Assembly (NCBI GenBank): GCA_047495785.1
Contig: JBLDXI010000043.1
Location: 620,001-684,000 of the forward strand
Direction: 5' to 3'
DNA length: 64,000 nt
DNA from: Lepidodermella squamata
Lineage: Eukaryota; Animalia; Gastrotricha
Shown here in pieces: positions 15,489-38,913 of the stretch. The translations under genes were made by a program, and so were the position numbers. The notes under the pieces were generated by a model. That model made no database searches, had not been told where the DNA came from, and was given only the letters and a program-made list of their open reading frames with translations. The stretch's first letter is position 1. Each line of letters opens with the position of its first letter.

Positions 15489-16409
15489 ATGGAGGGATCT
15501 GTCACGATCAAGCAGGGTCAAGTAGCCGTTGCAGATGGCACAAAACTTTACTATGAAATCAGATATTCGCCAGATCCTCCTGCCAACTCAGCTGAAGCCG
15601 AAAGAATAATTATGATTATGGGCGCTTTTGCCACCTTGAAGCATTACGATGAAACTGCTGATATGTTGGTGAAACACTTTGCGAAGACGAAAACTCCTGT
15701 CGAGGTGTTGACATTCGACAATCGTGGTATTGGTAAATCAACACCAGCCCCCAAGGTCAAACAATCGACCAGCATGTTGGCTGGCGATACTCTAAATTTG
15801 ATTAACCAAGTTTGGGGTGAAAACAGCCATGTGCATCTTTATGGGGCCAGTTTAGGCGGCATGGTCGCCCTTGAGTTGGCGACTACGCTAGTTCCAGCAA
15901 AACGGTTAAAATCTCTCTACCTTGCAGTCACGTCACGAGGCTCAGCTGTTCGACCCCTTGGTATCCTTGGTACTGGAGTTTGGTCTGCCTTGATGCCAGC
16001 ATTCATTAAATCAGACCGGGAAAGAATGGTGCGTGATGTTTTGCTACCGGCGTCATTTTCGGCGGAAACTTTGCAGACTCAGGGCGAAAAGTTTGCTCAA
16101 ATGTGGCTGGCTGATTACGACGCATGGTGGGCGTTTGGAGATCTACAAGCTTGCGCTTGCCAATCGCCAGCTGCCGCTACTCACTACGTCTCTGATGAAA
16201 GATTGCGTGTAATTCGAGAAAGTGGAATTGCTATAACTGTGCACATTGCAACGAAGGACAAGTTGATACCGCGGAAGAAGCAGGAGGAACTCGCGAAATT
16301 GTTGAACGCAAAAACAGCAGTTTTCAACCACGGACACATGGGCGATGAAGATGCTAAACTTCAAGTTTTCCAGGCTGTTGTAACTCATTTGGAGACCGCA
16401 ATGACATGA
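15489..16409 (+). CDS. Alpha/beta-hydrolase (Abhydrolase_1 type), intronless
   Basis: 306 aa ORF; FDNRGIGKS, nucleophile elbow GASLGG, acid in KDKLIP, His in GHMG; AATAAA at about 16521. Confidence 0.9.
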   Translation: MEGSVTIKQGQVAVADGTKLYYEIRYSPDPPANSAEAERIIMIMGAFATLKHYDETADMLVKHFAKTKTPVEVLTFDNRGIGKSTPAPKVKQSTSMLAGDTLNLINQVWGENSHVHLYGASLGGMVALELATTLVPAKRLKSLYLAVTSRGSAVRPLGILGTGVWSALMPAFIKSDRERMVRDVLLPASFSAETLQTQGEKFAQMWLADYDAWWAFGDLQACACQSPAAATHYVSDERLRVIRESGIAITVHIATKDKLIPRKKQEELAKLLNAKTAVFNHGHMGDEDAKLQVFQAVVTHLETAMT

Positions 16410-16755
16410 ATTTTGTTTCAAACACGCATAAGTATTATTGATTATTTGAGCATCATGATTATGAATGATTCGCGGTTTTATTATTTTGAATTATTTATAT
16501 TTTAACGTTGAAGTGAAGACAATAAAAAGCGAGACTGAATTTAGTTTGATGCTGGTTTTCAGTATATCTTTTTTACGGTAACATCATTGACCACATTCAG
16601 CGCAGTGAGTCAGGGAATAGGAATATTATGTTCAGGCCGGTTTTTACTGGGTGCGGAGTGCTGAAGTGCAATTTCAACTGCGTTAAATTTAGAAACGAGT
16701 TTCAGCTTAAACACCCAACATGTTAATTAGGCCGTCTGATACAGCAAATGAGTTA

Positions 16756-17762
16756 CCGGGGAGCGGTACAATGTTGACAACGCCCAATGCTCTTCCCTAA
16801 AAAAAAATGCTAAAAAATCAGGTTTTTTGAATCCGGTAAATCTGACGACACCATTAGAAACTCCTTCACCTGGCGCTAATTTACATGCCAAAAACCAGGT
16901 TAAGGTAAAGAAAGGTACAATGTTGACAATCTCGGTTTTTTTGTTTAAAATTCCAAAAGCATATGCAGATGAGGTCCTTGGTTTTGAATAATTTCTCTTC
17001 CGAACCCACACCCGAAGTAAATGTGATCTTAAAATCTTTCTTGCCTGCTTCGTGATGCGGCATTTAGAAGCCACTCCAGCTGCCCAAAGGGCCCAAGCTG
17101 TCTGGCAGAGGGGTTAGCCACCAGTCCGGTTCTATATTCGATATAAAATAAGTAAACAAAATCGATGAATCATATTTTTCGAGCACATTCAACACCGTTC
17201 AACATTTTCCATAGGGTGGCCCAGAACTATCGAGGCATACTTTCTAGGCTAAAATACAACTTACAGGCCTCAACTTATCATCATAGCGTCGAATTCAAAG
17301 CCGTTATAAAAAACATTAGCAAAATTTTAGAAATTCTCAACGCCGTTTTGCCTTGTGTCAAAATTGTACCGGCTGTCAAATTGTACCCAGAAGTTGCACC
17401 TCAAAAAGTGCGTCTTTACCGCTATAATTTACCTGGAATTGGCTCTTTCAAAAAATTTCTTTTTACCTTGACAATTCCTGGAATATTGTTAGCTCCGTTT
17501 CCATATAAAAATCATTTTCAGAAACCACCTGGTTGAGGAGATACGGAGGGGTCATTTTGCTATTTTCATTGCTTCTCGTAGAATAAATCAATCGCCAATA
17601 ATCGAATCGAAATCGGGAAAAATAACTGGATATCCTCAAACTAGAAGAGGTCAGGTATTTTTCGCTCATTTTTACAGAATTTTAGGATGAAAGGCCCAGG
17701 TAGGCCAGCAGGTAGAAAAATGTTGTCAAGGTTGTACCTGACAACATTGTACCCTTCCCCGG
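16756..17762. mobile_element. Non-autonomous Tc1/mariner (pogo-like) element, about 1.0 kb
   Basis: TA flanks; TIR ccggggagcggtacaatgttgaca vs reverse complement ccggggaagggtacaatgttgtca (3 mismatches in 24); internal copies of the ggtacaa/tgtcaa motif. Confidence 0.8.
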
Positions 17763-18735
17763 TACGAAATTTTGAAATCATACGCGATGTCAGCTATTAT
17801 GGACAGAAAAGCCTCTCAATTATTTTATCGGCTACTTTAACCTAATCTACGTGGCATAAGTTATCGCGCCTAGAGCGCCGAGAGGCGGATGGTTGTACAA
17901 ATAAAATCTCGATATGCCAATGTGATGAAGCTGACACTTAACATAGAATCTGAAAAGCCAACCCGATAAAATGCGAAAACATTTTCCAAAGGTTTTGGAG
18001 TTTCCTCCTGGGATTGTAGATATTTGACACGGCGCGTTGTTTTGTACCAAATAGTCGGATCCTGGAAGAGATCGCTTTTCTTCAACTTTTTCTCTACTTT
18101 GTTCTTCGATCCGTGATAAATTTCAGCTTAAATTCCACCAATTTCATTTGGAAAAAGACGACTTTCTCCAAATATTCTATCAATCCACTGGCCACTGGTC
18201 CATTTTCGCGAAGGAGGTACAGCTCTGGAATCTTGAAGCACATAAGGAGTATTGTTTAGCCTCGGCATGGCTCCGGTTTGGAACCTACGTAACGAAATAA
18301 CAAAGCTGATAATTTTATTTTGATCGCATCACGTTGTGTTGAGACGTTGAGATTGGAGAGAAGAGAAGATGAGAGAAGAGAGAGATCTTGTGTGAAATCG
18401 ACTGATTGTAGATAATGAATGCGCGAAATTGTGCAACATTATATGGGACCAGGGAAAGCAGCCAAGCTCCACTTTGCATGTGAAACTTGGCCGAGCGTCC
18501 CTCTTTCCTCAGAATAGTAAAAGTAACTACAATAACATGATAGTTATCCTTTCTCTTATTATTTGTACAATATCGTAAAAAGTAGCAAGTTGTTGAGATT
18601 GGAAAAACTACGACAAGAGACATGGCTTGTATATTTTGTATGTATAAATTTGCGTTTCAGATACACAGCGTATTAGACTAGAGATGAATAATACCTATAT
18701 ATAATAGCATGGCTAACAAATTGCGCTAAGACTGT

Positions 18736-18969
18736 TCATTTTTTGCCTAACAGGAACGGATTGTAGCCGTTGTAGTTGTACGGCTGGTTCGAGTAGGTGC
18801 GCGACGCCGAGCAGTCGTCGAGGTACGGCTTCCACGCGTCGCACTTCAACGCCGGGCCGAAGAATTTGTTCTGCCAGTGGAAAATGATGCCTGATTCAGC
18901 GATCGTGAATATGAGGTTGATAATGACCAGCACGAGGATCACAACCAGCAGAGCCGTGTTTTCAGCCAT
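18736..18969 (-). CDS. Single-pass microprotein family member A (77 aa)
   Basis: MAENTALLVVILVLVIINLIFTIAESGIIFHWQNKFFGPALKC...NPFLLGKK; shares the N-x13-W motif with three neighbours. Confidence 0.8.
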   Translation of the reverse strand: MAENTALLVVILVLVIINLIFTIAESGIIFHWQNKFFGPALKCDAWKPYLDDCSASRTYSNQPYNYNGYNPFLLGKK

Positions 18970-19732
18970 TGATTTCGGTTTGTTTTGATTTTATTCGACT
19001 GCTATAATTAGCAAAAAACTACTGAGCTAGAAAATACGATAAGGTTATAAAACGATGACAATGAAATACTATTAAATTTGGGCGGGATGTTGCGATTTTT
19101 TTTTATCAGGGATAAGCAATCGGGTGGTAATGAAAACCATGCCTCTGCTAGTGGGTTCGCCCTCACCGGCTACCTCGTGAGGTCAGTATTTAAGGCGAGA
19201 AGAATAAAACTAATGCTGCATTTCGTGACTTGCGCTGATGGATTCGAGGCCGTTGCTAATCGTTGCTAAGCGCGTTGATATAAACGAAGGAACTATTGCA
19301 GCTTCCGGGCCTTTGTGCGGCCTTGGCCTGCTCGCATCGGGACACAGCAGTCGCCGGCCAGTTCCAGGATGGAGTCATGCACGAGGCATAGCAACCCAGC
19401 CTTGCTTTCATTTTTATTACGACTCATTTCCAATGGCAATAAGCCGTTGTTTGTAGTTTCGTAATGAAATCAACTAGTATATCCGTGATAGTGCCTTTTG
19501 ACAGCCAGCGCACCGGCATAGTTTCAAGAAAGTATAAATTGAAAAAGGTAGCAAAATAACTTGACAACGACATGCCAAGTACAGTGCAAAGAAATTTCGA
19601 AAACATTCAGTTCGCAGCCACACCCGAAAGCACGTAAAGGAGTAGAGAGTGAAAAAATAGTAAAAATCACCGAGATCAAAGTTTTGATTGAATTAATCAT
19701 TAATGATTGAAGTTGTTCAGAAACAGTTTTTC

Positions 19733-19973
19733 TTAATAAAGTCTGCCATAAATTATTCGATTGCAAGTTTGAACTGCTCGAATAGCTTGGCAATTGAGGA
19801 TCGGCCCAAAGTAGACATCTTGCCAGTAGAATATAATTGCTGCAGCGCAGATTGTCAATATCAAGTTTAGGAGAAGGAGTACAAACATTGAAATCACCAC
19901 AGCTTTCATCAGTTCTAAAGGAAAACGTTGGGCAATCCGAAATTTTCTAATCAGTTAAAGTTGGCTTACCCAT
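19733..19973 (-). CDS. Single-pass microprotein family member B (61 aa; not in ORF track)
   Basis: Exon ATGG 19973-19970, 55-nt GTAAG..AG intron, exon 19914-19733: MELMKAVVISMFVLLLLNLILTICAAAIIFYWQDVYFGPILNCQAIRAVQTCNRIIYGRLY. Confidence 0.8.
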
Positions 19974-20182
19974 GTTAGATTTTCAGGCTCGAATTTCCCA
20001 AGTTATACTGCGAAAGACGTGTTTGTTTATTTTAAATAAAACCTAAAATTCAGAAAAAAAAAGAAATGTTCATATATGAACGCGTTAACTTGAGCTATAT
20101 TATAAAATCAAAGCGTTGACAGCAAACGATAAAAAGTCAGCAAAAGCGTGCATACGATCGCTTGAAAAACAGTTCATTGCAA

Positions 20183-20402
20183 TCATCCAACGAGTAGTGG
20201 AGCGTAGTAAGGAGCTCCGTCGTAAATTCGTTGCCAGTGGAAAATGATGGCGCCCGAAGCGATGATAATGCACAGATTGAGCGCCAACAAGGCGATGATG
20301 ATGTACAAGAACAGCTTGATAGTTTTCACGATTTCAACTGGAAAACAGGCAGAAAACAGAGACTAATTTATGTCATATCAGTCATTTTTAATATTTACCC
20401 AT
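20183..20402 (-). CDS. Single-pass microprotein family member C (52 aa; not in ORF track)
   Basis: Exon ATGG 20402-20399, 61-nt GTAAA..CAG intron, exon 20337-20183: MVEIVKTIKLFLYIIIALLALNLCIIIASGAIIFHWQRIYDGAPYYAPLLVG. Confidence 0.8.
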
Positions 20403-20600
20403 TTTGCCGTAAATTTATAGTTAACAAATCCCTAAAACAACAGAAAAAGTCAGGTGTAAGCAAAAAAAAAATTAACTGTGACATATCATTCAAAGCAATA
20501 TATCAACGTAAAAGATGTTTTATAACGAAAAGGCAAAGCGCTGAAGCTGCATAACATTGCATTTTTTTCGGAACAGGATCACGGCAGCAAATTTCGCGCA

Positions 20601-20837
20601 TCAACCGCTACCAGTTGGATATGCAGCGTTCGAAACCGCGTCAATGAAAGGGCGGTAATACGTGTGATGCCAGTTGAAAACGATGACTGATGCGCAGATC
20701 GTGAAGCAAACGTTGAGGAAAACCAGCACAATGGCGACGATGAAGAAAGTCTTGACTTCCTTGAGCATATCTGTTAACACACATTTATAACAATCGATAT
20801 ACCATTTGGAAATTGCTGCAGCTATATTGTTACCCAT
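20601..20837 (-). CDS. Single-pass microprotein family member D (57 aa spliced)
   Basis: Exon ATGG 20837-20834, 63-nt GTAAC..CAG intron, exon 20770-20601: MDMLKEVKTFFIVAIVLVFLNVCFTICASVIVFNWHHTYYRPFIDAVSNAAYPTGSG. Confidence 0.8.
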   Translation of the reverse strand: MGNNIAAAISKWYIDCYKCVLTDMLKEVKTFFIVAIVLVFLNVCFTICASVIVFNWHHTYYRPFIDAVSNAAYPTGSG

Positions 20838-21880
20838 TTTTCCGAGGTGTCAGTTTGATCGAGCTGCAGCGTTTATTATTATTGTTCTTATTATTAAATG
20901 AAGAAATAACGCTAGAATGTGTGTTTTTCGTCGGGCGATGTGTCAAGTCTTGTTGCTAGCTGGACACCGCCTATTAAATAAGACTGCGGTCGCGACTTCA
21001 GTACTAGCGTTCAGTGAGGGCAAACTCTGAGCCGTAAAAAACGAGAAAGCACTCAGTCACCTCGGCAGGCTCGCGTAGTCCGAGTGTTTGGCATGGGGCT
21101 GCTGGCACGTTGCTTCACGAAGGGAGTATTTACCAGTACTGCAGTTACACCGATGTGGCAAAAGTGACTCTCTTTTTTTCGCTCAATTGCGTTTTTTTAT
21201 TCCTGGCACGCTCTTGTGACAGCAGAAAATCAACTTCACCAATCCGGTTGTTTTCCACATTCCGTTTTTGTATTTCCAGAATTACAGTTAGCAAACTCCG
21301 GAGTGCAACAGCAACAATGCATGTAAAAGCTTTTGGCACGAAAGGCTTGTGCGTAAAAAAATTACCGGCCTCTTTTTGACGCAGCAGTAGTAGGCATTCA
21401 TCACGTCGCCGTAACCCTTGGCACACACAACGTGTGCGCACACACGTTAACTAGACTGCATGTAGTAGTAGTAATGGAAGCATCTGGAAAATGTTAACAA
21501 AGTAAAGCAACATAGTTTTGTCGTTGCTTTCAGCAGTTAGTTTCCTGAGCAAATACAGTCTTGTTCTACTACATCAGCATACCATTTTTTATTCGTTTGA
21601 TCACGTGTCCCAACAGGTAGGTAGGTATTCAAGACGTCATCATCAAGCCTGAACCAGTCAATTTACGCGACCTGTTGTATCTCACCTGAATAGCGACGTG
21701 TGTTTTGTACGGCAGGTAAAGAAGAAGAGGACGAACTCATTCTCTACCCATCAACCTACGTCAGCTCTTTTGAGATACACCGCCGCCGTTCGTTTTATTT
21801 ACTCACCTTAGTTTTTTCAGCTGTGCATTTTCACTCAAAGCATTGGATTTATTGCCCTCTGTACGATATAGGTTTTACAT

Positions 21881-22879
21881 ATGAAAATGTCATCGCCCAC
21901 GGATCGCCAGATGACGCTATCTGAGAAACTCGCTGATCAACAGCTGCAGTCCATGATTGCAACTACCCTGTCATCTGGTAAAGTCATGCCTGCTTACCCA
22001 GTGCCAACCGTTATTGCGGCTGGATGCAATGAGAAAATGATCAGCGACCAGAAAACTCTGATTCCTGTCCAACTCGCTCCACCTACCAAGCAATGTATTC
22101 GTCGCCGGAAGGCTGCTTCATGCTGCGCAACTTTCCTCTTCGCCGTAATGACCCTGCTTTCGATGGGCCTCATCGTCTACCTGGCGGTTCACGCCCATCG
22201 CCAGTGGGTTGCTTACTGCCACGGAATGCAGGCCCACCAGCAAGCTATGATGGCTGGTGCGAATTATAACCAACCGAGGTTTGCACACCGTCGCCATCAC
22301 GACGACTCTTCCTCAGCTTCTGATGAAATGAATGATGGCAACAATGGGCTTCTGTTCGAAAAACTTATGCGGCCGAAAATTGAGATTTCATTCACTTCGA
22401 TCACTTTCGTGTCGAGCGACAACAAGCAGCAGCTGCCCGTACAACAGCAACCAACTGTTATCACTGGCAGTGCGGATGCGGATAATAGCAAATCGATCGA
22501 AGACTTGAGCCGTGACCCCATGTTGAATGAATTTTTGTCGATGCTGCTTCAGGACAACGATAACAATGAACTGGTGAAGCCAACGGTGCCAACTGTGGCA
22601 AGTGGTGTTACGACCCAGGCCCCGACCCCGGCGGACCAGGATGCTGACGAGCAGCTTCAACAAGCCATGGAACAATTTGGCAACATGTTTGCCTCGATGA
22701 TTCCCCAGCAGATGCCTTCGGTCCAGCTTCCGCCAATCCAGATGCCTACATCGAGCCAAACCGAAGATTTCTTCCGCAACATTTTCGGATTCGGCCAACC
22801 GGCACAGCAGCAGCAACCTCAGCCGCAACAGGAACAGCCACGCCCGGTGCACCTGCTTGGCGCTAGCGGCCACGATTAA
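21881..22879 (+). CDS. Orphan type II single-pass membrane protein with Gln/Pro/Met-rich C-terminal region
   Basis: 332 aa ORF; RRRK followed by TM FLFAVMTLLSMGLIVYLAV; AATAAA at 22971. Confidence 0.72.
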   Translation: MKMSSPTDRQMTLSEKLADQQLQSMIATTLSSGKVMPAYPVPTVIAAGCNEKMISDQKTLIPVQLAPPTKQCIRRRKAASCCATFLFAVMTLLSMGLIVYLAVHAHRQWVAYCHGMQAHQQAMMAGANYNQPRFAHRRHHDDSSSASDEMNDGNNGLLFEKLMRPKIEISFTSITFVSSDNKQQLPVQQQPTVITGSADADNSKSIEDLSRDPMLNEFLSMLLQDNDNNELVKPTVPTVASGVTTQAPTPADQDADEQLQQAMEQFGNMFASMIPQQMPSVQLPPIQMPTSSQTEDFFRNIFGFGQPAQQQQPQPQQEQPRPVHLLGASGHD

Positions 22880-24188
22880 AAAAATTGCATTTGTTTTCTC
22901 GAAAGACATTTAAGCACTCAGTTCACACGTTAGGCATGCCTTGTTTTTGGTTAAACCGTGGCGGCTTTTGAATAAAATGGTTGTTTGATTTTATTCCCTT
23001 CGTCTTTTGCAATTACGACGTTTCATCTTCCTAAAACGAGATCAGGAAGATATCGGAATTCATGAAAATGCAAGTATGTAAATGAGCAAGCCGCTGAGAA
23101 AGCGAGGAAAAGGTGACACTTCCTACGCTGTCTCGACATTTTTTCCTGTTTTTTAGGCATGGCGGAGAACAACTGCAAGATGAATCACCAGCAGAAACTA
23201 ATATGCGCACATTTTGGTCTAATCTTAGCTTCATGGTGATTACTTGTTTTGAATAGGTATTTTCTGAATCACATCGATGTGAATAGCGTGAATCGACGTC
23301 GACAATCCAGCCTACCGAAAATTGTATAAATAGTATATTGTACTGGAAATAATAAGGACACCTTGAACTAGCCATCCACGGTTGAGGATGATTAATTGGT
23401 TGTAAAAGAACTGTCGATGAAAACCGTCAAGGGTGTCCTGTATTAGCAAGGCCTTTGCAGGTTTTAAGCATATCTTTCATAGTAGCACGCGCATTCAATA
23501 ATTCCTCGAAAGCATGCCTCATGCTCGAGTATTTCAATGGGTTCCATGTTTCATTCTTAACTATTTGCTACCGGAATGCAGCATTTCTCGCATGAGCCAA
23601 CTAACTTGTCAGATTTGCAGTAGCAGATGCGTAGAGGAAAAGACGTGGCGACAGGAAATTGAGCTGCCGTGGTATTTATCTATATAATTAGACACACCAC
23701 CGGTGCTTCTTGCAAAGAATGCTCAGGCTAAGCAATACAGTTGTATCGTAATACCTGCACATGTAACAAGCATTAGTACATCGATGAATTGCCTTTTGCA
23801 TGTTTGTAAAATATGCTAAGGTGTCTCTGCGCTTGTTGGGCTTGCATTTTTTTACGACCTCATTACAGCACTATTTGAGCATTGCGTCTGGTGTCGTGCT
23901 AGCGGCGGCGAAACTGCGAGCCAATTGTGCATGCAATAGCATCGCAGCCTCAAATGACACCCCCTTCTTTCCTGCGTACGTATGCAATTGCAGCAGAGAG
24001 CAACCACCAGTCGTCGACTCAGGTGCCAACAATCCGCTACATTTGTATAAATAATAAAAAGAAACACTAATCAACCGATTGTCGCAGCTGGTCGACACTT
24101 CTCGTTCTGCTAAAACAACCCCCACTTCAAACGCAGCAAGTCACAGTCAGATTTTCATTCTTTAGCCATAGCAAGCGCAGAGTCGCGA

Positions 24189-36275: not shown

Positions 36276-37367
36276 CTAATACCTATTTGTAAAATAAAAG
36301 TGATGAAATATCTATCGGGAGCTAAATTTCATGGCTGCAGGTAGCAGAGGTCTAATTTATCTGAACCATTATGCGCTCATCTGTTGAGGTTTAAGGATAA
36401 ATTCACGAAGACCCTAGTTCCTAGTGCAAACAAGCCAAGTTACACGTGGTCAAAGCATTAATTTTTCTTCCTGATCAACAGCGCTGAAGCTGCAGTTTAA
36501 GTATAATTTCCATCTTATGGAAGTTGGAGAGAAAGACGAGTTTCAAAAACTAGCCGAATGCGGTATCGTTCATCATTCAAGCGCACTAGATATAGAAATC
36601 AGCATCCGTTTCAGGACCGCTTGCGCACAGTCCGCATCGCATCAGTTACGAGCTTGAGTTCGCAAAGGCGGCACGAGTTTTCAGAGCTGAAAAGACGAAA
36701 ATTCCTCTGACATCGTTGCCATAACAATATTATTCACACAAATAATGCAGTCTACTTGAAATATTTTTAATTCATAATTAGCTATTGTTTTTTAATTACA
36801 ATTATTTGCATGACGACCAGCTTCCCGCGCTACCAAGTTGGTACTCTAAGAACATGTGCGAGTCCATCTCGCAGATTGTGTAGTTGCTGTTACCGCAATA
36901 AGCGAGTCTTCAGGGTGCGTAGATCCGCTATAAAAACATCAACTATGACGCTATATACATGTCTTAAAACATCAGTGGATCATAGGCATTTTTTTAGGAA
37001 GGAAGCAATATGGAACTCCTCATAGAGTTCCGAAGACCACTGCCCTTGTAAGCATCTTATCCACATGAGAAACCTCTAGCTCTATTCAACTCAAAACAGC
37101 CCTTGCAAATATCTGCGTATCCGCCGAAGTCTAAGTATCTGAATATGGGCACTTGTGCCCGAAACATTGCTTGTTTGTAGCCTTAACAATGCCTCCCTGT
37201 TCGTCCATTTGAGAATTTTTTTATATAAGTGATGAAGGTCTTGCGATCTTGTGATCTGAATCATTTTCAAACCACAGTGGCAACGCCGAAATCCGGCCCA
37301 TGCATAACAGGCTTAACTTGCTTTTTGATTCTTTAGGGTCCTTTAATTGGATTGACACGGATTTAGA

Positions 37368-38913
37368 ATGGCTGGTCAAACGAAGCCAGACATGGACCGT
37401 GTGGGCATCTTCAAGGAGATGGGCTACATCTCCATCGGAGACCCCTACACAGTCGCGAAACTGGACTTCAACACAGCTGCGACGAAGGGCAAGCAGTTAA
37501 TAGCACCCGCGTCGAAATCCAAAAATGCTACTCAAGCTGGTTATTTTACCGAAAAATACAACCGAATTATGGACGGCGAGTCCTATTCCGACCCAGTGAG
37601 AATGCGGAGGCAATGGCGCTTGCAGGAGAACAAGAAAATCATTGGAGGTCGCAACTGGGTGCCCGCCAGTGGCGAGAAGAAGCCTTCAGGTTTAGGCAAC
37701 CACTACGGCACGATCGGTGGAAAAGTCGAATACTTCGCAGCTATCGGTCACCCGCCGAAGAAAGAAGTCGAAAACAAGAAGAACTTTATGACCAATCCTG
37801 GCAAGAGAGGAACAGGCTATGGGTAAGAACTGAATACATAATTTAGAAGCACCAAATCGAGCTACTCATATTGTAAAGTTACTTGAATGTCGGCATCGGC
37901 AAATTTATGGCGCTGCCGTCGAGTAATTATGACAGTGAAAAAGAGTTTATCAAAGTTAGTTCATAAATTAGTTGCTGCGGTGTGAATTTCTACCCTTTGA
38001 CCTTATTTGGCTTTATTTTTCGTTGAAAAACGTGCTTATCGTGTTTTTACCCTATTCAGTTACGTTGCTGTGGGCTTGGATAAGTATCCTGAACATTCTC
38101 AGGACGACTACCGAGGCGAAGCTAAAATGATTTTGGTAATTTCCTGCTTCTATCATTTTTACTTTTTTCATTCAAACCGATGTGTCTTCCTCGAATTTAA
38201 ATCTCATTCGTTTTCACAGAAAGAAACAGCTGAACACAAGAAGCTAATGAAATCGGGTGCGTTCAAGCTTGGCATGCACCCAAAGAACTTCTTCGAAGAG
38301 AACCCCTTCAAGACGAACAAACCTCTGCCGCCGGCGAAACACCAGCCGAAATCGGCACCGCCACGCTCTGGTCCGTTCCGGCCGAGCAACCCGGGCAAAA
38401 TGCTGGGCGGCAACAAATCGGGTGGGTTCGAAAAGTGGCCGGCGCACTCCGAAGACAAGTACGTTGTCGCCGGGTGGCAGTCGCGGCCAGTCAAGGTCGT
38501 CAACACAACCGGCAAGACGTTCGTTCCAAACGCGTGGCCGAAATCAACTCCCGCTCGCTCTGTTATCTATCAAAACGTCGATAAGTAAGTGCTATCAACC
38601 ATGCTAAACCACAAAGCTCAATCGAATTCAGTTATGATCACGGCCTAGGGCGTAGGCAACTTTGTCTTATTGAATTTGAGCCTGATTGAATTTTACTTAA
38701 TTCTGACATCCATAGAAAAATGGATGTTCAAGAAATTGGAGTAAATTGGCTTGGTATAAGGCCATACTTATCTGTGTACCCAGTTTATTGGCATAAAACT
38801 GAAGATTACACATTTCATGCATCAAACAGGAAAATTAATTTTTTCTGTTTCATTTCAGAGCCGTCAACAACAACAATTACAAGGACGTAAAAGCAGTAAC
38901 AGCGTGTGGTTGA
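37368..38913 (+). CDS. CFAP96: CFAP96 (C4orf47, DUF4586) cilia- and flagella-associated protein with duplicated alternative exon 2
   Basis: DMDRVGIFKEMGYISIGDPY, GLGNHYGT, KNFMTNPGKRGTGYG; exons 37368-37822, 37879-37954 or 38060-38135, 38220-38584, 38859-38913. Confidence 0.9.

Follow-up and report, generated by a model that had tools for sequence, protein, structure and literature searches.

Operons of the Caenorhabditis elegans SL2 type consist of co-oriented genes with U-rich intercistronic stretches of ~100–170 nucleotides (nt); each downstream start codon closely follows an unpaired 3′ splice site. The operons of Ciona and Oikopleura have almost no intercistronic region. The polycistronic transcripts of tarsal-less/polished rice carry very small open reading frames (ORFs) of 11–32 codons on one unspliced mRNA with no introns. 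Here, we analyzed an array of four paralogous genes, D, C, B, and A, which lie within 2.1 kb on the minus strand of contig JBLDXI010000043.1 of the gastrotrich Lepidodermella squamata, and whose products are single-pass membrane microproteins. The window refers to the whole stretch analyzed, 64,000 nt long (contig positions 620,001–684,000), and array coordinates are given within it.

The array resembles nematode-type spliced-leader (SL) operons in gene orientation, in its U-rich spacing of ~100–170 nt, and in its candidate unpaired 3′ splice sites near the starts. It differs in that all of its cistrons are paralogues of one microprotein family, whereas the cistrons of nematode operons are unrelated, and in that neither the spacer between D and C (D>C) nor that between C and B (C>B) has a canonical poly(A) signal assignable to the stretch before the acceptor. 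A likeness to tunicate (Ciona) operons is offered by an AATAAA of C>B, 17 nt before the AG at 20009, which would make the poly(A) site and the acceptor nearly coincide; this likeness is limited to C>B, requires that the weaker AG at 20009 be used, and is inapplicable to D>C. With tarsal-less, the array shares several paralogous, very small, same-strand tandem ORFs, but its ORFs have 50–77 codons, and D, C, and B each contain their own mini-exon and intron.

An earlier note on this DNA had described the whole array as operon-like, offering three readings: an SL trans-spliced operon, a shared noncoding leader exon spliced in cis, and a spliced polycistronic small-ORF mRNA. The operon-like description remains tenable for D-C-B, which are co-oriented and closely spaced, with homologous strong acceptors, chance-level donors, and AT-rich spacers; GC-rich islands (51–52% GC) occur in the array only upstream of D and A. 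It probably does not extend to A, which follows B after a gap of 729 nt and has its own island. We propose tentatively, at somewhat under an even chance, that D-C-B are read from one promoter upstream of D and that the 5′ ends of C and B are made by SL trans-splicing. In this model, transcription of D-C-B would start at a promoter within the GC-rich region that precedes D and yield a single precursor, and the C and B mRNAs would gain their 5′ ends via splicing at the strong 3′ splice sites 20433 and 20044, which we take to be SL trans-splicing of the kind known from nematode, flatworm, and tunicate operons. A probably stands apart as its own transcription unit, which would perhaps also be trans-spliced. 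Co-transcription, leader addition, and promoter placement are the parts of this model that we infer. Because the 5′ ends of C and B would be confined to 140–170 nt of sequence that resembles an intron, has no donor of its own, and terminates at a first-class 3′ splice site, a common precursor fits better than two complete promoters, and because no long introns or gene skipping are needed, trans-splicing is favored for D-C-B, mainly on architecture.

The genes D, C, and B arose by tandem duplication of a ~430-nt unit composed of an acceptor module, a short 5′ untranslated region (UTR), an ATGG mini-exon, a short intron, a coding exon, and a short tail. Their start codons lie at 20837 (D), 20402 (C), and 19973 (B), and that of A lies at 18969; the ATG-to-ATG spacing is 435 nt from D to C, 429 nt from C to B, and 1004 nt from B to A. 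In D, C, and B, ATGG is followed at once by GTAA, so that a coding mini-exon of 4 nt precedes a short phase-1 intron, and the reading frame is carried on by the second exons. All three genes retain an A at −3 together with ATGG and the GTAA donor, and the start-codon surroundings of C and D (20395–20409 and 20830–20844, CGGNAAAATGGGTAA on the minus strand) are identical at 14 of 15 bases. This identity far exceeds the expectation from the 33–44% protein identity, suggesting that the start context and the donor are under selection. Since D, C, and B have each kept their own start context and mini-exon, each start codon seems to be used, and every mRNA would thus need its own 5′ end upstream of its ATG. 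The D intron is in frame and without stops, so that the unspliced ORF of 78 amino acids (aa) is also open. As a separate observation, retention of this intron (20771–20833) would add 21 N-terminal residues to the protein; unlike the D intron, those of C and B contain stops.

The individual sequence elements listed in the earlier note were recovered. Candidate acceptor AGs are present at 20865/4, 20433/2, 20009/8, and 19003/2, which lie 26, 29, 34, and 32 nt before the ATGs of D, C, B, and A, and a CTGAC with a pyrimidine tract precedes the AG of C. The stop-to-AG distance, given as near 170 nt, was measured as 167 nt for D>C and 173 nt for C>B, the AATAAA placed ~20 nt before the AG of B occupies 20031–20026, 17 nt before it, and the candidate donors GTGACT at 21060 and GTATGC at 20155 are present. 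The claim built on these AGs, an acceptor 26–34 nt before every ATG, is not the real regularity: an AG at this distance precedes 42% of all 2106 ATGs of the window, and stronger or homologous sites lie elsewhere. The four-of-four occurrence has p ~0.03; for YAG (Y, pyrimidine), found at 22% of ATGs, p is ~0.0025, with a distance window that was picked after the fact. The regularity of the AG-to-ATG spacing is weak and not beyond chance, and the operon-like reading of D-C-B depends neither on it nor on the AGs of the earlier note as a set.

Site quality was assessed as the number of pyrimidines in the 16 nt preceding the AG. This simple count replaced a splice matrix; an automatic intron finder with an iterated weight matrix gave mostly false introns, and a stricter filter left about a dozen probable introns in the window. 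Among the AGs of the earlier note, that of C has 13/16 pyrimidines (top 1.5% of 7194 AGs), that of A 10/16, that of B 9/16, and that of D 6/16. The acceptor tracts of the probable introns span 6 to 14 pyrimidines (14/16 in the gene C intron), and a weak tract therefore does not exclude a site. When ≥13 of 16 pyrimidines, ≥9 T, and YAG were all required, only 33 of the 7194 AGs in 128 kb of strand passed, several of which are acceptors of probable introns. These 33 include 20433 and 20044, in the spacers before C and B; by chance, a site of this type is expected in ~2% of given 70-nt stretches. The candidate 3′ splice sites before the cistrons are strong at C (20433) and B (20044), moderate at A, and weak at D. 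The strong acceptors follow the upstream stop after 167 nt (D>C) and 138 nt (C>B), and no ATG occurs between the candidate acceptors and the respective start codons of D, C, B, and A.

Local alignment showed the D>C and C>B spacers to be colinear (z = 2.5; score reached by 4 of 200 shuffles), and it pairs the TTTTAG/G of C with the TTTTAG/G of B at 20044, not with CGCAG at 20009. A module of T-rich tract, AG, 6–12 nt, and WATAAA has four copies in 128 kb (both strands), three of which lie before C, B, and A versus 0.5 expected, and a degraded version occurs at D. The WATAAA ends 11 nt (C) and 20 nt (A) before the ATG and has no counterpart before the genes of the relatives. This module could also be a family-specific promoter element, as it would be if the four genes were independent, each with a compact promoter in its spacer and a short unspliced 5′ UTR, the AGs then being either fortuitous or initiator components and the T-runs serving the upstream gene as 3′-end signals. 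Tandem duplication normally copies a promoter along with its gene, B fits a TATA plus initiator arrangement (TATTTAAAA starts 29 nt upstream of the A, at 20009, of CAGT), a GCAGTC is found at 19003 before A, and tandem relatives on a metagenome contig (L002) retain common upstream motifs at distances of 570–760 nt. However, because the WATAAA ends so close to the ATG, it cannot serve as a TATA box for C or A; transcription starting ~30 nt past it would begin at the start codon or farther downstream, so that the arrangement of a TATA ~30 nt before an initiator upstream of the ATG, within promoters of the TATA type, fits B only. Moreover, ~140–170 nt of sequence, intron-like in composition and without a GC island, would have to accommodate a complete promoter in addition to the 3′ UTR of the preceding gene, and the textbook 3′ splice site of C (CTGAC, 13/16 pyrimidines, TTTTAG/G) would be left unexplained. 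We consider independent promoters unlikely; if they were nevertheless present, the spacers would be among the most compact animal promoter-plus-terminator units known.

The GC contents of the spacers (33.8% and 32.1%) are close to the mean of the probable introns (34.6%). Each spacer contains one loose donor-like site, GTGATC at 20582 and GTATGC at 20155, which is uninformative since ~1.5 are expected by chance. In another reading, D, C, and B would stay together on one mature small-ORF mRNA and be translated by reinitiation; these two sites may then serve to splice out "intergenic introns" (20582–20434 and 20155–20045). The donor-like sites lie 19–28 nt past each stop, with the strong acceptor 111–149 nt later, and GTATGC is the donor of two other probable introns in the window (29677 and 42325). 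The D>C spacer is without AATAAA, and tarsal-less in Drosophila is a known precedent. Nevertheless, donor-like 5-mers at one per spacer are at chance level, ORFs of 50–60 codons are long for efficient reinitiation, and the related RNA contigs are all monocistronic (L003–L005, and probably L006 and L007). A polycistronic message of this kind therefore seems very improbable.

In the SL operon model, the GC island before D would supply the promoter of D-C-B, and the island before A would serve A separately, a role that we infer for both islands; when the two were compared, no homology between them was found. The region upstream of D also contains donor-like sites, of which those at 21806, 21685, and 21133 were rated good and GAG/GTGACT at 21060 weaker. 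With these same-strand donors, a noncoding leader exon upstream of D could be joined in cis, alternatively, to the acceptor before D, C, B, or A. Introns in the 5′ UTR are plausible for two neighboring genes. In CFAP96 (window 37048–37368), whose start codon is well supported by a Pfam match, the ATG follows a strong CTTTAG/G (CTTTAG at 37335) by 31 nt, with a GTAAGC donor 288 nt further up, at 37048; in the divergent 332-aa ORF, T6CAG (21819) lies 60 nt before the ATG and GCAG/GTAAAG (21706) 114 nt further up. These examples indicate that an acceptor shortly before the start codon is common in the window, which is compatible with either a leader added in trans or ordinary 5′ UTR introns. For the array, however, a cis-spliced leader would need introns of 0.2–2.7 kb, in comparison with the usual 42–90 nt in the window, and to reach B or A, entire upstream genes and their strong acceptors would have to be bypassed. 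The donors also have no specific tie to the array, and two of them sit in the 5′ region of the divergent gene. Such a leader is, in our view, distinctly improbable.

A profile search returned nine relatives of the microproteins, none of which is from the L. squamata genome. The family, to which P0002, P0003, and P0005 also belong, combines a single membrane helix with a two-cysteine core and, in many cases, a tail rich in Trp and Asn; such tails are carried by its longer members, and the microproteins A–D of the window (18736–20837) are at its short end. The metagenome contig L002 (4.7 kb) carries three tandem short members, all with the ATGG/GT mini-exon. In favor of the SL operon reading, a pyrimidine-AG site just before the ATG recurs in two relatives: T8CCTGTTAG lies 9 nt before the ATG of the family member on L008, and T7AAG lies 7 nt before that on L001. 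The L008 member begins 249 nt after a same-strand SOCS-box gene, the AATAAA of which is ~110 nt past its stop. The RNA-like contigs L003–L007 have one ORF each (L006 and L007 probably), and L004 ends in poly(A).

Several observations weigh against the SL operon reading of D-C-B. The candidate acceptors at D are poor. The poly(A) signals are irregular and at odds with a simple operon: AATAAA is missing from D>C, which has only a TATAAA at +76 after the stop of D, and the sole AATAAA of C>B (+151 after the stop of C) is downstream of the strong B acceptor. Further AATAAAs were found at +314 after the stop of B and at +416 after that of A. Elsewhere in the window, AATAAA follows within 66–111 nt for only 4 of about a dozen stop codons, so that this signal is a weak guide here. 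The tandem genes of L002, ~570–760 nt apart, share upstream motifs as independent genes would. Finally, no common leader was found among the 5′ ends of the related RNA contigs, which stem from three or four other organisms and may be 5′-truncated; these ends match nothing in the window either.

Taken more broadly, the locus may represent an operon solely of paralogous microprotein cistrons in Gastrotricha, grown by duplicating a cistron with its intercistronic acceptor and resolved by SL trans-splicing. Judged from the sequence, we would call this possible rather than probable. No paper on trans-splicing in gastrotrichs was found, and the genome paper does not mention it (PMC11660948). If the SL operon reading is true, the locus would show operon growth by tandem duplication of a cistron plus acceptor module. 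With its four short genes within 2.1 kb, the array would also be a small and clean case in which to test SL processing in a phylum for which we found no published example, and the real 5′ ends, and hence the start codons, of an orphan microprotein family would be fixed. The coordinates of the array features are listed in Table 1.

Table 1. Features of the microprotein array and its upstream region. Positions are those of the window; negative distances are to the ATG, and a slash marks a splice boundary.
Feature	Position	Strand	Details
Gene D	20601–20837	−	ATGG mini-exon 20834–20837; phase-1 intron 20771–20833, 63 nt, GTAACA...AACAG; exon 2 20601–20770 including stop
Gene C	20183–20402	−	ATGG mini-exon 20399–20402; intron 20338–20398, 61 nt, GTAAAT...TTCCAG; exon 2 20183–20337
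Gene B	19733–19973	−	ATGG mini-exon 19970–19973; intron 19915–19969, 55 nt, GTAAGC...CTTTAG; exon 2 19733–19914
Gene A	18736–18969	−	No intron; 77 aa
D>C spacer	20403–20600	−	Stop to ATG 198 nt; 33.8% GC; T10 run; without AATAAA; TATAAA at +76
C>B spacer	19974–20182	−	209 nt; 32.1% GC; T9 run; AATAAA at 20026–20031
C acceptor candidate	20432–20433	−	−29; CTGAC, T-rich tract, TTTTAG/G; strongest of the set
B acceptor candidate	20043–20044	−	−69; T9 run, TTTTAG/G; 13/16; homologous to the site of C
B AG of the earlier note	20008–20009	−	−34; CGCAG/T; 9/16; also readable as CAGT initiator with TATA-like TATTTAAAA starting at −29
A AG of the earlier note	19002–19003	−	−32; TTATAG/C; 10/16
Alternative A acceptor	19027–19028	−	−57; TTTTCTAG/C; 12/16
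D AG of the earlier note	20864–20865	−	−26; GCTGCAG/C; 6/16
Alternative D acceptor	20887–20888	−	−49; AAG; 11/16
GC island before D	20961–21170	−	52% GC; 125–330 nt upstream of the D ATG; putative promoter region for D or D-C-B
GC island before A	19130–19430	−	51.5% GC; 160–460 nt upstream of the A ATG; putative separate promoter for A
Donor-like sites upstream of D	21055–21806	−	AAG/GTGAGT 21806; CAG/GTGAGA 21685; CTG/GTAAAT 21133; GAG/GTGACT 21060

Further searches were performed with the locus and its products. The spliced B, C, and D proteins were searched exon by exon and by reference, with the exons not joined. Exact look-ups of protein A and of the neighboring 332-aa ORF in the protein collection gave nothing, and word searches with protein A and B exon 2 found no transcript or genomic copy of the locus in this collection. 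Two scans of the metagenome contigs yielded no confirmable transcript or copy of the locus, and no contig resembled human sequence. An Rfam scan of window positions 16000–23000 gave no match, and the motif GGGCACGACGAT of the relatives was not above chance in the window.

In the relatives, the motif GGGCACGAC(GAT) occurs on the sense strand ~30–130 nt after each short L002 gene (683–690, 2244–2251, 3275–3282, and 4075–4082) and terminates contig L003 (919–926). Its reverse complement ends L005 (938–945, minus strand), 10–14 nt past an AATAAA, and the 3′ end of L006 is a close variant. The motif, which is absent from the window, may be a 3′-end element or a repeat that breaks assemblies.

Downstream of A, a gene-free region of 2.3 kb contains two arms of 26 nt (window 16754–17764) that are 88% complementary and 959 nt apart. 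Their core is GGTACAATGTTGACA, of which further copies lie at 16914 and 17356, and the arms resemble a small DNA transposon's terminal inverted repeats.

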